Shown here one piece after another: positions 5,367-62,167 of a stretch of 64,000 nucleotides of DNA (position 1 is the first letter of the stretch; every line of letters begins with the position of its first letter). Location: the IMG/VR virus record IMGVR_UViG_3300049855_000348, positions 62,001 through 126,000 of that record; one strand, given 5' to 3'. The notes below the pieces were generated by a model. It was not told the DNA's origin and searched no databases. It saw nothing but the letters and a program-made list of their open reading frames with translations. Made by a program: the position numbers and the translations under genes.

Positions 5367-5414
5367 TCAAGAGTTCCAGATCAGGAGGTAGAGACGATAG
5401 AGGAAGGACTGCAT
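5367..5414 (-). CDS. Putative leaderless 15-aa micro-ORF (MQSFLYRLYLLIWNS)
   Basis: ATG lies 5 nt after the -10 of the promoter at 5420-5447; its TGA directly abuts the next ATG (TGAATG). Confidence 0.4.
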   Translation of the reverse strand: MQSFLYRLYLLIWNS

Positions 5415-5419
5415 GATTT

Positions 5420-5447
5420 CCTATAGCGACTGATTGATCTAAGTCAA
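5420..5447 (-). promoter_or_regulatory. Repeated sigma70-like promoter, copy 1
   Basis: TTGACT-TAGATCAATCAGTCGC-TATAGG. Confidence 0.75.
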
Positions 5448-5753
5448 CGATCCGGTTTCGTTACTGGTCAATCCGCTTTCGAGATGTCTGATGTTGATCG
5501 ACTCTCTCGACGTGTAGTCGACGCGAACGATCTCCATGCCAGCGGTCGCCTCCAATGGGAGTTGTGTCCTGATGAAGTTCAACAGTGCCTGCATCTGATC
5601 ATACTGGTCATAGCAGATTGGTGGGCTGCGCTTGCTGAGGATCTTCTTGGTGTAGCTTAGCGTCATCCGACCACCGTTCTTGCCGGAGAGCCGGCTGAAC
5701 ACTGAGCAGAGGTAGTCGTTCTTGCTGCCGACGATGCAGTAGCAGGTCATCAT
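5439..5753 (-). CDS. Hypothetical protein with C-terminal GLTxxExG tag
   Basis: ATGA overlap with the 5750 gene; ends ESGLTSNETGSLT. Confidence 0.7.
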   Translation of the reverse strand: MMTCYCIVGSKNDYLCSVFSRLSGKNGGRMTLSYTKKILSKRSPPICYDQYDQMQALLNFIRTQLPLEATAGMEIVRVDYTSRESINIRHLESGLTSNETGSLT

Positions 5754-5980
5754 AGAGTTCCCTTCTCTTCCTGCGTCAGACCAAGGCTCGCTTCGTATTT
5801 CGCCTGTGAGGTCTTGAGCATATCCCAATGGACCTCAGCTTCCTTGATCAGTCGCAGGCAAGTCTTGCAGGTGACCAGTGCTTTGTTGTCAGAAGCACGC
5901 ATGGCGTAAACGCCACAGTACGACTTGCCGGCGTTTGGTCGAGTTCCGTGAACGATGATAATTTTCTTCTGGTCATTCAT
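5750..5980 (-). CDS. Small zinc-finger-like protein with GLTxxExG tag
   Basis: H..CG..VTCKTC motif; ends SLGLTQEEKGTL. Confidence 0.75.
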   Translation of the reverse strand: MNDQKKIIIVHGTRPNAGKSYCGVYAMRASDNKALVTCKTCLRLIKEAEVHWDMLKTSQAKYEASLGLTQEEKGTL

Positions 5981-6192
5981 GCTGGCATTCCGGTCTCGGC
6001 TGAGGTCAATCCACCAGCTTCAATCTCGGCTTCGTAGTCTTCCTGCGAGACTTCACCACGGCACACCGGACAGGTGACCAGCGGCTGCATGGATGCGATC
6101 TTGATCCCCTTCGTGTTGGTCCGCAGACCGCAGGCGGTGGTGTCGTTCCTGAACAGGCCACGGTAGTGCGTGTGATCGAGTGATGGCTTCAC
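5977..6192 (-). CDS. Small zinc-finger-like protein with GLTxxExG tag
   Basis: H..ACG..VTCPVC motif; ends GGLTSAETGMPA. Confidence 0.75.
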   Translation of the reverse strand: MKPSLDHTHYRGLFRNDTTACGLRTNTKGIKIASMQPLVTCPVCRGEVSQEDYEAEIEAGGLTSAETGMPA

Positions 6193-6374
6193 GCTGGCAC
6201 CCCTTGCTCTGCCGTGGTGAGACCGGGCTTCTCTTCTTCACCGAGACGAGCCCAGGCCAAGCACGACGAGCACGTGATCATGCCGATCTCTTTCGTGGTA
6301 CGAACGTCCGGATCGGCGAGTTGTCTTCCACACCCAGTATGATCGGTGAAGATGACATGCCAGTGAATCATCAC
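6189..6374 (-). CDS. Small zinc-finger-like protein with GLTxxExG tag
   Basis: H..GCG..ITCSSC motif; ends PGLTTAEQGVPA. Confidence 0.75.
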   Translation of the reverse strand: MMIHWHVIFTDHTGCGRQLADPDVRTTKEIGMITCSSCLAWARLGEEEKPGLTTAEQGVPA

Positions 6375-6787
6375 GTCGGCCTCCCTTGCTCTTCAGCGGT
6401 GAGACCGGTCGGAGCTTCCTCGTCTGATTCCCTGACCACATTCCCTTCAGCATCGAGCCACACACAGCGGGTAGAAGCCTTGATAACAATCACTCGTTTT
6501 TCAGGCATCTCGAAACCCTGACCAATTCCTTGATTGGCTGGCGGTTTGACTGGTGGCATCGGGATACCACCACTAAGACCACTGGTGGCATCGGTTGTCG
6601 GCTGCACAGCAAAGGACTCTGGTTCCTCACCATCTCGCCAGTCGACATTGGTTCTGAACTTCCACTGCTTCTTCCGGCAGTTCATGCAGATACGAAGATC
6701 GTGATGATCACCCAGAGTGGTTTTCTTACCCACAAAGGGCATCGACCATTTGTGATAGCCTACCCGACATCCGAGTGTTGCGCTCAT
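6371..6787 (-). CDS. Hypothetical protein (C..GxHKW..CxxC N-terminus) with GLTxxExG tag
   Basis: Overlapping start and stop with neighbours; ends TGLTAEEQGRPT. Confidence 0.75.
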   Translation of the reverse strand: MSATLGCRVGYHKWSMPFVGKKTTLGDHHDLRICMNCRKKQWKFRTNVDWRDGEEPESFAVQPTTDATSGLSGGIPMPPVKPPANQGIGQGFEMPEKRVIVIKASTRCVWLDAEGNVVRESDEEAPTGLTAEEQGRPT

Positions 6788-7221
6788 TACGACAGATTCT
6801 CGTAGATCACGAACCGCTTGCCAAGGGCAGCCGCCTCTTCGGCACCGAGGCTGATGAAGAACCGGTATTTCTCGTCGGCGTAGAAATGCGCGTTCAGAGC
6901 ACGCTTCACCCGGTGGAAGTAACCGTCGGCGAGGACCTGCTCCTCAGCCGTGCGCCAGTGCGGCTTGACGCTCGGGACGACATCCTCGATGTCCATGCGG
7001 TTGATGCAGAACACCTTGTAGGGAGTCCGACCCGGCAGGCTGGTCATCTCGATACCAGGGAAGCTCTGGATCTGGATACCGCTGGCCTCGGAGCGCCGGA
7101 TGGCTTCTTCGATGTAGCGGTCCTGGAGTTCCCTGACCGTGTTCTCGTTGAGATCGGCCATCTCCTCCTTCGTGAAGACGGCTTCCCAGGCGTAGTAGAT
7201 CCCGTAAAAGGTCTGGCTCAT
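6787..7221 (-). CDS. Hypothetical protein
   Basis: Start MSQTFY at 7221 overlaps the stop of the upstream gene. Confidence 0.7.
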   Translation of the reverse strand: MSQTFYGIYYAWEAVFTKEEMADLNENTVRELQDRYIEEAIRRSEASGIQIQSFPGIEMTSLPGRTPYKVFCINRMDIEDVVPSVKPHWRTAEEQVLADGYFHRVKRALNAHFYADEKYRFFISLGAEEAAALGKRFVIYENLS

Positions 7222-7490
7222 AGCGGCTTCCCGTATTGGAGGGTGGTGAGGACTGAGGTTTTGATCTGTTCGGGAGTGTATTCGTGGTTGAAGCGGGCTT
7301 GGTAGGTGCCGGCCCGGGCGATCACAGGGTCGCCGTTGGCATCCTTCTTCCACTCGTGATCGACAGGCAAGTCGATCGTCGCGTAGTTGCGATGCAGTTC
7401 GAGGTGCAGCACCTTCACTCCCGGGAAGGTGTCCTTCTCGATCAGGGAGATGACTTCGGCGCGTTTGGAGGCGAGTTTGGCTTTGCTCAT
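7218..7490 (-). CDS. Hypothetical protein, leaderless
   Basis: ATG is 6 nt downstream of TATACT. Confidence 0.75.
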   Translation of the reverse strand: MSKAKLASKRAEVISLIEKDTFPGVKVLHLELHRNYATIDLPVDHEWKKDANGDPVIARAGTYQARFNHEYTPEQIKTSVLTTLQYGKPL

Positions 7491-7496
7491 GCCCAC

Positions 7497-7524
7497 AGTA
7501 TAGCGACCTTTCTGTCTAAGTCAA
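7497..7524 (-). promoter_or_regulatory. Repeated promoter, copy 2
   Basis: TTGACT-TAGACAGAAAGGTCGC-TATACT-GTGGGC-ATG. Confidence 0.85.
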
Positions 7525-7778: not shown

Positions 7779-7892
7779 CCTCTACCTCAAAATGGTTTGG
7801 GTGTTGACAGCGCCAAAAGGGTCAATATGCTCCCGGCTCCAAGGGCTAAGACGGTTCCGTTTCACGGAGTAGTCGAGGCAAGCCCAGAGATC

Positions 7893-7921
7893 ACCCTCCA
7901 GCCACACCTGGAGGGTTTTTT
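7893..7921 (+). terminator. Intrinsic terminator
   Basis: CCCTCCAG-ccacac-CTGGAGGG followed by TTTTTT. Confidence 0.75.
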
Positions 7922-7934
7922 CGTTTATAAGTCC

Positions 7935-8537
7935 ATGAGCCCAGAATTAGTTGCAGAAGTGTTCACCCGCATCCATGACCAGAACCTCTGGGGCAGTCCT
8001 GAGAGCGTTTCTGGCGGTGGAAGTGCTCTGGAGGCCACCACCAAGATCCGCGCCGAGATCCCGGCCCTGATCGCCCAGCATGGCATCCTGAGCATGCTCG
8101 ACTTGCCCTGTGGAGACTTCAACTGGATGGGTGAGATGCTGAAGGTTCTGCCTGATCTGCGGTACACCGGTGGTGATGTGGTGGTTCCGCTCATCGAGAA
8201 GAACATCCGCAAGTACCCCACCATTCGCTTTGAGGTGTTGGATGTGATCTCGTCACCCCTGGCACAGCATGATCTGGTGTTCTGCCGTGACTGCTTGGTT
8301 CACCTGCCTGAGAAGCTGGTTCGCAAGGCCATCGAGAACATCAAGGAGAGCAACTGCCGCTTCCTCCTGGCGACCACGTTCCCCAAGGCCATCCCCCAGG
8401 ACATCGAAGTCGGACAGTGGCGTCCGCTCAACCTGATCCCCTTTCTGGGAGAGCCGATCCAGGTGATCAGTGAGTGCTTTGCTGACCTGGATGGCGTACC
8501 AACCGAGAAGCAACTCGGACTGTGGCGCTTCCGGTAA
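7935..8537 (+). CDS. Class I SAM-dependent methyltransferase
   Basis: WG..ES.SG.GS, MLDLPCGDFNW, Y.GGDVV and CRDCLVHL motifs. Confidence 0.85.
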   Translation: MSPELVAEVFTRIHDQNLWGSPESVSGGGSALEATTKIRAEIPALIAQHGILSMLDLPCGDFNWMGEMLKVLPDLRYTGGDVVVPLIEKNIRKYPTIRFEVLDVISSPLAQHDLVFCRDCLVHLPEKLVRKAIENIKESNCRFLLATTFPKAIPQDIEVGQWRPLNLIPFLGEPIQVISECFADLDGVPTEKQLGLWRFR

Positions 8538-9199
8538 TGCCTCCTCCACAACCACAACGACCGTTGTCCGACAAGGGTGACGTGGATGAGATCGGCGACC
8601 TGAAGGATCGCCGGACATGGCTGTCTGGCCTGCTGGTGCAGTTCGCCTACACCAACTTCCACCACGACCCACATCCGATCTGTGTGGTCCTGTACGCCGA
8701 CCGTCGGTACACCCATGCCATCAACGTCAGCTACCTGAGCGGTCAGCAGCGCCGGCAGTTCAAGGGTGGTCTGCGGATGTGGTACATGCTCGATCCTCGG
8801 CTGAAGTACCACTGGATGAAGATCTACAACAAGACGTGCTTGGTCGGCTATCGGACCTACTTCACCGGTCTGCTTCATCCGCTGACGGCTTGGCCCATTC
8901 AAGAGGTGAAGGACTCCATCCCGCAAGCCATGGGGCTGCTGGGCTCGATCAACGGCATCAAGCCGACGGACTGGGGCAAGTTCGCTGCTCGTGCCACCAA
9001 GGCGGCGACGGCTCGTGATCTGGCCATGAGCAACCGGCCTAGCGCCCGTCCTAATCAGCAGAGACCATCGAATCGTCCGAACGCAAGACCATTGGCGATT
9101 CGGGTTGGAGAAGCTATTCGACGGGCTGAACGTGGGATGAACCAGGGATCAATCCGACCGGGTCCTCTGCGACCACGTGGCCAGCGACCGGGGCAGTGA
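8537..9199 (+). CDS. Putative DNA end protector (T4 gp2-like)
   Basis: D..P.C.VL...AIN.SYL...R..F...YRTY pattern; basic C-terminal tail. Confidence 0.45.
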   Translation: MPPPQPQRPLSDKGDVDEIGDLKDRRTWLSGLLVQFAYTNFHHDPHPICVVLYADRRYTHAINVSYLSGQQRRQFKGGLRMWYMLDPRLKYHWMKIYNKTCLVGYRTYFTGLLHPLTAWPIQEVKDSIPQAMGLLGSINGIKPTDWGKFAARATKAATARDLAMSNRPSARPNQQRPSNRPNARPLAIRVGEAIRRAERGMNQGSIRPGPLRPRGQRPGQ

Positions 9200-17750: not shown

Positions 17751-18710
17751 TTAGAAAACCTGCTTGCCCAGATCCCCTCCGTTGCCCTGGCTGGCGAAGC
17801 GACCGGCGCGACCCTTCTTCACCGCCTCGGCCTGGGAATCGCTCACCGACAGCGGCTTGCCTTCAGCAGTCCAGATGTCGTTGAAGCACGAGCGCAGAGC
17901 GGTGATCTCGGCCTCATCATCCGAGAAGCGGGTCAGGAACATCGTCCGTGCCGTCTGGAAGGTGTGGACGGCCATGTTCTTGGCCAGATCCAGGAAGGCG
18001 CGGGTCGACACGTCCGAGTGGACGGCCTTGTTCTTCACCGCAGCACGCACCTTGCCGACGAACTGTTCCAGGGCCACCGCATCACGCGGATCGAGCTTGT
18101 CGACCGAGGAGTTGTTGCGCAGCACGGCGATGTCCAGTTCCTGGTGGTAGCCCAACTGGAGTTGGATGGCGAAGCGGTCGCGGAAGGCTTCGTTCATCAC
18201 CCGGACGCCCTCGTAGAAGGGGTTGCCGGCAGCGATCAGGCCGAACTTCTCGTGGGCCACGACGACTTCGGGCTCACCATCAGGACCCGGCTTCTCAGCC
18301 AGGACCAGTTCACGACGGTGGTCGAGCAAACCGTGGATGGCGAACGACACCTCGGGCTTGAGGCTGTTGATCTCGTCGAGCAGACAGACGTGACCGTTGC
18401 GGGCGGCACGGGTCAGGATGCCATCCATCCAGACGTAGCCGACACCGGAGGGGTTGGGGATCCACTGGCCGATCAGGGCTTCACTGGTCGCACCCGTGTG
18501 GCAGGGGATGTAGCAGTATTGCTGATTGAGGCGCAGAGCCACGTCAGCAGCCAGACTCGACTTGCCGGTGCCACGGGGTCCGAGGAGCAGACAGTTCTGC
18601 TTGTTGCGGATGGCGTCGCAGAGGATGTCCACGTCGGTCTTGTCGTGGTACTTGCGGGCGATGTAGGTCGAAACGGCGGGTGCCGGCTTGGTTGCTGTTT
18701 TCGTGGTCAT
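17751..18710 (-). CDS. MoxR/CbbQ/CobS-family AAA+ ATPase
   Basis: Walker A GPRGTGKS, Walker B LLDEIN, sensor AAGNP.YEG, MNEAFRDRF, STR. Confidence 0.92.
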   Translation of the reverse strand: MTTKTATKPAPAVSTYIARKYHDKTDVDILCDAIRNKQNCLLLGPRGTGKSSLAADVALRLNQQYCYIPCHTGATSEALIGQWIPNPSGVGYVWMDGILTRAARNGHVCLLDEINSLKPEVSFAIHGLLDHRRELVLAEKPGPDGEPEVVVAHEKFGLIAAGNPFYEGVRVMNEAFRDRFAIQLQLGYHQELDIAVLRNNSSVDKLDPRDAVALEQFVGKVRAAVKNKAVHSDVSTRAFLDLAKNMAVHTFQTARTMFLTRFSDDEAEITALRSCFNDIWTAEGKPLSVSDSQAEAVKKGRAGRFASQGNGGDLGKQVF

Positions 18711-61588: not shown

Positions 61589-62167
61589 TCAGGGGTTGTT
61601 GAACAGCCTCACTTGGATACCGAAGTCAGGCCGTTCGGCGATGGTGGCAGCATCATCGTCATACCACTCGCCCTTGCCGAAGACTTCAGCCAGGACATCG
61701 CGGTTCAAACGTAATGAGTACCACAGCAGGATGGGCGCTTTCGGTTTAGCGACACGTTTGACTATGTCAAGCAAACGACGCTGGTCCTCTTCGACGAGAT
61801 GTTCGAGGACGTTGATCGAGGCGACCACGTCGAAGGAGGCGGTCTGAAGGTCGTCAGAGACGTTGGTATAGAACAGATTGGGCTGTGGGACCGCACACTC
61901 CTTGCGGGCCAATTCAACGCACTCGATCACCGGGTCGTAGCCGACCACGGTTCTGAAGTAGCCGGCCAGCGGACGGGCGATGCGACCGGTACCACAGCCG
62001 TACTCCAGGAGTGTCATCGATGGGCTGATAGAGGCACCGGCGTGAAGCCTGCGGATGCACTCCATGGCGACAATCGCCCCATGCGTGGCATAGGCGATGT
62101 CGTCGTTTTGGTACTTGTTTGCGATCGTCTTCCGAGGCGAGCGCCAGTGGTCTTGAGTGAACGGCAT
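61589..62167 (-). CDS. Class I SAM-dependent methyltransferase
   Basis: LLEYGCGTGRIA, VVGYD, FDVV...VLEHL. Confidence 0.9.
   Translation of the reverse strand: MPFTQDHWRSPRKTIANKYQNDDIAYATHGAIVAMECIRRLHAGASISPSMTLLEYGCGTGRIARPLAGYFRTVVGYDPVIECVELARKECAVPQPNLFYTNVSDDLQTASFDVVASINVLEHLVEEDQRRLLDIVKRVAKPKAPILLWYSLRLNRDVLAEVFGKGEWYDDDAATIAERPDFGIQVRLFNNP
61743..61770 (-). promoter_or_regulatory. Repeated promoter, copy 14 (intragenic)
   Basis: TTGACA-TAGTCAAACGTGTCGC-TAAACC inside the methyltransferase CDS. Confidence 0.6.

Follow-up and report, generated by a model that had tools for sequence, protein, structure and literature searches.

Organisation of the array

The DNA analysed here (the window) is a 64,000-nucleotide stretch of IMGVR_UViG_3300049855_000348, a 220,489-bp viral contig in which window position w corresponds to contig position 62,000 + w. 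The run that holds the contig is labelled a freshwater sediment metagenome, and the phage has a T4-type tail sheath and baseplate protein. Five consecutive small genes (P1–P5) lie on its minus strand, with stop and start codons that overlap at all four junctions as GTGA, ATGA or TGATG, and each encodes a protein that ends in GLTxxExG followed by 2–3 further residues (3, 3, 3, 2 and 3 for P1 to P5 respectively). The genes, tags and flanking features are listed in Table 1.

Table 1. Features of the tagged array and its flanks (window coordinates)
Feature	Position	Strand	Length	Description
Promoter heading the unit	7497..7524	minus	28 nt	Sigma70-like, TTGACT-16-TATACT; the ATG lies 6 nt after the −10 box, so the mRNA is probably leaderless
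First gene	7218..7496	minus	92 aa	Untagged; a homolog stands directly before P1 in L005
Second gene	6787..7221	minus	144 aa	Untagged; variable slot, filled by an unrelated-looking protein in L007 and L053 and empty in L005
P1	6371..6787	minus	138 aa	N-terminal CHCC zinc-ribbon-like motif, Pro/Gly-rich linker, small conserved C-terminal domain; tag GLTAEEQG-RPT
P1 tag codons	6383..6406	minus	24 nt	GLTAEEQG
P2	6189..6374	minus	61 aa	HCCC zinc-ribbon family; tag GLTTAEQG-VPA
P2 tag codons	6201..6224	minus	24 nt
P3	5977..6192	minus	71 aa	HCCC zinc-ribbon family; tag GLTSAETG-MPA
P3 tag codons	5989..6012	minus	24 nt
P4	5750..5980	minus	76 aa	HCCC zinc-ribbon family with a longer helical linker; tag GLTQEEKG-TL
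P4 tag codons	5759..5782	minus	24 nt
P5	5439..5753	minus	104 aa	Counted from the ATG that overlaps the P4 stop; alpha/beta protein without a conserved zinc site; tag GLTSNETG-SLT
P5 tag codons	5451..5474	minus	24 nt	No overlapping downstream gene follows
Next promoter	5420..5447	minus	28 nt	Same family, TTGACT-16-TATAGG; −35 box formed by the last codons of P5 (Leu-Thr-stop), as also seen in L005, L007 and L053

The initial annotation, made from the sequence alone, had described five tandem genes with a shared ending, variable tag codons and at least two protein bodies unrelated to the other three; the shared ending and the codon variation are confirmed, and the unrelatedness of two bodies to the other three is supported. 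A six-frame scan of the window with the strict motif, and with the relaxed form G[LIVM][TS]..[ED].G, finds only these five occurrences, and the same is true of about 40 kb more of the same genome, giving about 100 kb in total. From the six-frame residue composition, 0.11 strict hits are expected per window and a hit has about an 11% chance of lying within four codons of a stop. In an all-against-all comparison of the C-terminal 14-mers of about 88 predicted proteins, only these five cluster.

Conservation in related phages

An exhaustive profile search with the three zinc-ribbon members of the array (P2–P4) found three foreign proteins that carry both the domain and the tail, and a profile of P5 found one more relative. 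Their metagenomic contigs show the same syntenic array, flanked by homologs of the 221-aa, 160-aa and 1011-aa proteins of the window: L005 (10.7 kb) has 4 tagged genes, L007 (4.1 kb) has 5 and L053 (11.7 kb) has 6, whilst L006 is a 972-bp fragment. The 221-aa protein is 93–95% identical across phages, while its neighbours are 40–66% identical.

A small group of uncultured freshwater giant phages puts this same eight-residue ending on four to six neighbouring small proteins of at least three unrelated types. Together with the window, L005, L007 and L053 give 20 tags from four phages, in which G1, L2, E6 and G8 are invariant and T3 is Thr in 19 and Ser in one. Position 5 is A, E, D, Q or N, and position 7 is Q, K, T or R. 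Nineteen of the 20 tags end 2–3 residues before the stop; the exception, the P4-like gene of L005, carries 15 extra residues after the tag, so that closeness to the C-terminus is either not strictly needed or this copy is decaying. The tag is retained in every ortholog of the three related phages, with the five key residues conserved apart from the one T-to-S change, although the bodies of the orthologs are only 39–54% identical and the number of tagged genes varies from 4 to 6.

The level at which selection acts

Within the 24 tag nucleotides, the first and second positions of the five conserved codons are invariant, apart from the first base of Leu (C or T) and the single Ser codon. Third positions vary freely, with all four Gly codons, CTC, CTG, CTT and TTG for Leu, and GAG:GAA at 10:10. 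The junctions have no consensus RNA structure, and folding energies are no better than those of shuffled sequence (mean z-score −0.25). Free positions are no more alike between different tags of one genome (0.44 identical) than between genomes (0.44), and are slightly more alike between orthologs (0.52), so the copies are kept separately by purifying selection on the peptide rather than homogenised by gene conversion. DNA identity between copies is also too low for recombination, and recombination microhomology was rejected.

A point missed by the initial annotation is that in P1–P4 the GAR-NNN-GGR codons of the tag lie 5–12 nt before the next, overlapping start and look like its Shine-Dalgarno region. 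Other overlapping junctions in the window also end rich in G, K and E, but lack the motif. This overlap explains part of the composition but not the motif, because P5 keeps it in full in all four phages with no overlapping downstream gene (a 26–72-nt gap separates it from the next gene), and the GLT part has no Shine-Dalgarno role.

Proteins that carry the tag

P2, P3, P4 and their orthologs form one family with invariant H...C-G...T-C-x-x-C in a roughly 45-residue, HCCC zinc-ribbon-like domain, and 22 further database proteins match the family profile at E<=1e-3. The more distant members are single or tandem copies of this domain in phage-like or plasmid-like arrays of small genes, and they lack the tag. 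P1 and P5 are not members of this family, and profile–profile comparison of the zinc-ribbon, P1 and P5 families aligns only the 10–16-residue tail.

Searches of Pfam and PHROGs with the five proteins and their neighbours gave nothing significant, and a PDB sequence profile of the tail gave only chance hits. Foldseek comparison of the P3 and P5 models with the PDB, of the P3 model with the AFDB clusters and of the P5 model with the viral library gave no significant match, and ESM Atlas look-ups returned only unnamed phage or cyanobacterial clusters.

AlphaFold models place the tag outside the fold. In P3 the body has a pLDDT of 76–88 and the tail of about 50, with a one-turn helix at residues 64–67 directly after Thr63, so that Thr is the N-cap and Glu sits at N3. 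In P5 residues 1–92 are folded (pLDDT 80–91) and residues 94–104 are below 50, and the ESM Atlas structural matches likewise stop at residues 92–93.

Promoter context

A conserved sigma70-like promoter recurs at least ten times on the minus strand of the window, in the form TTGACwTAGACC-N4-GGTCGCTATACT, with a GACC-N4-GGTC palindrome in the spacer. Most copies have an ATG 5–6 nt after the −10 box, so that their mRNAs are probably leaderless. One copy heads the transcription unit that contains the array, and no further promoter of the family lies between it and P5. The same family is shared with replication-type genes, preceding an RNase T-like exonuclease block and an AAA_5 ATPase gene, but is absent from the 36–50 kb sheath and baseplate block, and no T4-type late promoter lies in front of the array. 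Early or middle expression is inferred, from promoter type only.

A putative recognition tag

The initial annotation inferred a shared address tag on interchangeable cargo, such as a docking, packaging, cleavage, conjugation or degradation signal, and this interpretation is partly supported. Its core withstood the conditions that had been set in advance for its rejection: the motif is massively enriched over background, it is retained in orthologs, and the five proteins are not simple duplicates, since only three are paralogs. What the tag does is not shown by the evidence presented here.

The best explanation is that GLTxxExG is a lineage-specific short linear recognition tag at the end of a flexible tail, read by one common trans-acting partner on a changeable set of co-transcribed small proteins (probability about 0.75). 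The analysis establishes that selection acts on the peptide, that the tag is modular across three body types, that it lies outside the folded domains of the models, and that the genes are co-directional and overlap without an intervening promoter of the family; the function of the tag, the timing of expression and the mode of binding are, by contrast, inferred. In this view the tag would form a Gly-flanked single helical turn with Thr as N-cap and Glu at N3 (a capping box), with Leu acting as the hydrophobic anchor, and would dock non-destructively into a pocket of the shared partner, tethering several early or middle effector-like proteins (mostly zinc ribbons) to the same hub in the infected cell. 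This docking or tethering version is tentative (about 0.4), as nothing distinguishes it from degradation, loading or processing.

The partner could be a host hub or a conserved phage protein, but none was found. The only complex prediction, which combined the 221-aa and 160-aa conserved neighbours with P3, returned no answer (score 0.01) and is evidence neither way. The adjacent methyltransferase (7797–8537) was considered as a tag-modifying enzyme, but is absent from that position in L005 and L007; the 86–94-aa and 182–184-aa genes that follow P5 in the relatives were considered as receptors, but are lacking in the window.

Alternative explanations

A degradation tag is possible but unlikely. 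In this reading the conserved part would bind an adaptor or protease (host ClpXP, Lon, FtsH or Tsp-type, or a phage protease), so that the early proteins are removed together later in infection. The tag is predicted to be disordered and exposed close to the free carboxylate, and the likely early promoter class fits proteins whose activity needs limiting. Its two-part look, a conserved internal block followed by 2–3 variable and often small or non-polar residues, resembles ssrA, which has an SspB-binding part and a ClpX-binding end. However, the terminal residues (PT, PA, TL, LT, QV, TP, PS, SL, AS and PG) are not LAA-like and do not match known ClpX C-motifs, the tag is encoded in the gene rather than added by tmRNA, and no protease or adaptor was recognised among the roughly 40 window proteins scanned.

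A virion-loading signal is about as unlikely. The tag would bind the scaffold, the capsid interior or another virion part, so that the small proteins are packaged and co-injected, as a C-terminal counterpart of the T4 internal-protein capsid targeting sequence (CTS). In support of this, the phage has T4-type tail components, the array varies in copy number and lies beside structural genes, and many equivalent binding sites would explain several cargos carrying one tag. Against it, the promoter family that drives the array is absent from the structural block, and the probable early or middle class argues mildly against a packaging signal.

Processing or conjugation is more doubtful still. A peptidase would trim the residues after the invariant Gly, or cut after the invariant Glu, and the new C-terminus would be ligated or otherwise used, as with the precursors of ubiquitin-like modifiers. 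The invariant Gly is followed by a short variable extension in 19 of 20 copies, on a tail that appears flexible and accessible in the models. However, the modelled bodies, a zinc ribbon (P3) and an alpha/beta protein (P5), are not beta-grasp folds and gave no beta-grasp matches, and in P1–P4 the position of the Gly codon is also explained by its use as a Shine-Dalgarno region. No E1, E2, JAB or protease domain was found among the about 40 window proteins scanned against Pfam, which cover less than half of the genome.

A motif without function of its own, left over from tandem duplication and kept by Shine-Dalgarno sites, a promoter −35 box or recombination microhomology, is largely refuted by the codon, RNA and P5 evidence above and by the lack of detectable relationship of P1 and P5 to the zinc ribbons, although three of the five proteins are paralogs.

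A more speculative and unlikely possibility, which would be of considerable interest if true, is that the tag is the address label of a previously undescribed phage cargo system. Exchangeable effectors, for example anti-defence zinc ribbons, would be fitted with GLTxxExG so that one receptor could either load them into the virion for co-injection or trim the tag at the invariant Gly and conjugate the protein; in either case any protein given the tag would be routed the same way.

Comparison with known systems

The initial annotation named the T4 CTS and encapsulin cargo-loading peptides as analogies, and both fit in logic but fail on position or sequence. The T-even internal proteins are a diverse set of fast-evolving, defence-countering small proteins from clustered, polymorphic genes that share only a targeting sequence (PMC3012670), and the present array is likewise a polymorphic locus of a T4-type myovirus, in which three body families share only the tag. 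However, the CTS is N-terminal and is removed by the prohead protease at (L/I)-x-E, whereas the tag is C-terminal, differs in sequence, has the spacing L-T-x-x-E and sits behind a probable early or middle promoter.

Encapsulin cargo-loading peptides are also short C-terminal peptides on a flexible linker, Gly-rich with a Leu anchor, and are found on unrelated cargo proteins read by one shell protein. Their GSL-type consensus differs from GLTxxExG, no neighbouring gene gave a shell or HK97 hit, and the context here is a lytic phage. Hub-binding C-terminal tails, such as the SSB C-terminal tip and the T4 gp45-clamp-binding tails of gp43, gp33 and gp55, allow several unrelated proteins to bind one hub through the same extreme C-terminal peptide, but those tails are aromatic or hydrophobic, or acidic plus hydrophobic, whereas GLTxxExG has a single Leu and matches no known consensus. 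Double-glycine leaders, the LPXTG sortase signal, lasso-peptide leaders, 2A peptides and Pup were rejected on position or spacing.

Literature searches found no description of the motif, in agreement with the initial annotation, which knew of no such phage system; a shared terminal address peptide is a known kind of device, of which this motif would be a form. Such peptides on unrelated cargo are rare, and where understood have been very useful: the T4 CTS and encapsulin loading peptides are both used to load foreign proteins. The comparative signal is unusually clean here, and the tag is short and transferable and its cargos small. Identification of its reader would give function to a block of ‘ORFan’ early genes, could uncover a host hub or a phage-encoded receptor, and could possibly provide a new handle for protein targeting in phage engineering.

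Occurrence in other sequence collections

The phage has no close relative among 50,697 deposited phage genomes, where a near-identity DNA search and a protein search with the 1011-aa neighbour found nothing. IMG/VR scans with the 160-aa neighbour, P1, a tail alignment, the 1011-aa protein and the 221-aa protein returned only the source contig, and the 221-aa protein found no relative in the JGI metagenome contigs or the GTDB genomes. An exact degenerate DNA pattern for GLTEAEQGT gave 0 hits in IMG/VR. The pattern for GLT[ED]AE[QK]GT gave 32 hits in JGI metagenomes, all single, none tandem and in line with chance expectation; the one C-terminal hit lies in a bacterial contig next to a PBP gene.

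Two freshwater metagenome runs hold roughly 90%-identical fragments. A sediment metatranscriptome run, although only a weak hint of transcription, holds two short contigs identical to 5634–5853 and 6147–6297.

Conserved promoter family and a gene behind it

A highly conserved promoter family of ~28 nt, TTGACwTAGACC-N4-GGTCGCTATACT, recurs on the minus strand of the window, and its spacer contains a palindrome (GACC-N4-GGTC) that could be an operator. In most copies an ATG lies 5–6 nt after the −10 box, so those mRNAs are probably leaderless. In IMG/VR the strict pattern occurs only in this contig, although related versions stand after P5, the last of the tagged genes, in the related metagenomic phage contigs L005, L007 and L053. 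One of the conserved promoters precedes a gene for a MoxR/CobS-like AAA_5 ATPase.

Genes surrounding the array

The promoter copy that overlaps the end of P5 is followed, 5 nt after its −10 box, by a 15-codon ORF that stops in TGAATG at the start of the 160-aa gene. In L005, L007 and L053 this position holds two full genes (86–94 aa and 182–184 aa), which the window phage seems to have lost, leaving this stub. Two contigs from a sediment metatranscriptome run are 100% identical to stretches that span the P4/P5 and P2/P3 junctions, although DNA carry-over cannot be excluded. In L005, the P4-like protein has 15 extra residues between the tag and its stop, which again overlaps the P5-like start; it is the only one of 20 tags that is not next to the C-terminus.

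A class I SAM-dependent methyltransferase (phrog_3382, E 2.5e-45) faces the array region divergently and is absent from the corresponding position in L005 and L007. A protein of 220–221 aa with a basic Arg/Pro-rich C-terminus is 93–95% identical across the window, L005 and L007, while its neighbours are 40–66% identical, and the L053 copy looks equally similar by eye. It has no Pfam or PHROG match and was tested as a possible tag receptor, for which the complex prediction gave no answer.

Coordinates of the promoter copies, genes and metatranscriptome matches
Feature	Sequence	Position	Strand
Promoter family (first base of the −35 box)	window	55641, 35834, 31645, 24206, 23122, 18771, 15083, 7778, 7524 and 5447	−
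AAA_5 ATPase gene	window	17751-18710	−
220–221-aa protein	window	8537-9199	+
220–221-aa protein	L005	2518-3189	
220–221-aa protein	L007	161-823	
220–221-aa protein	L053	5586-6248	
Methyltransferase	window	7797-8537	+
15-codon ORF	window	5367-5414	−
P4-like gene with extended C-terminus	L005	4352-4624	+
Metatranscriptome match, P4/P5 junction	window	5634-5853	
Metatranscriptome match, P2/P3 junction	window	6147-6297	

The HCCC zinc-ribbon family

The HCCC zinc-ribbon domain forms an unnamed family (profile-search proteins P0009-P0028; loci L049-L052), none of whose members has a Pfam entry. Its members carry one or more copies of the domain per protein (two in those read, and up to four matched stretches in the longer hits) and sit in phage-like or plasmid-like arrays of small genes next to RadC, HD, SNF2 or ParA-like genes.
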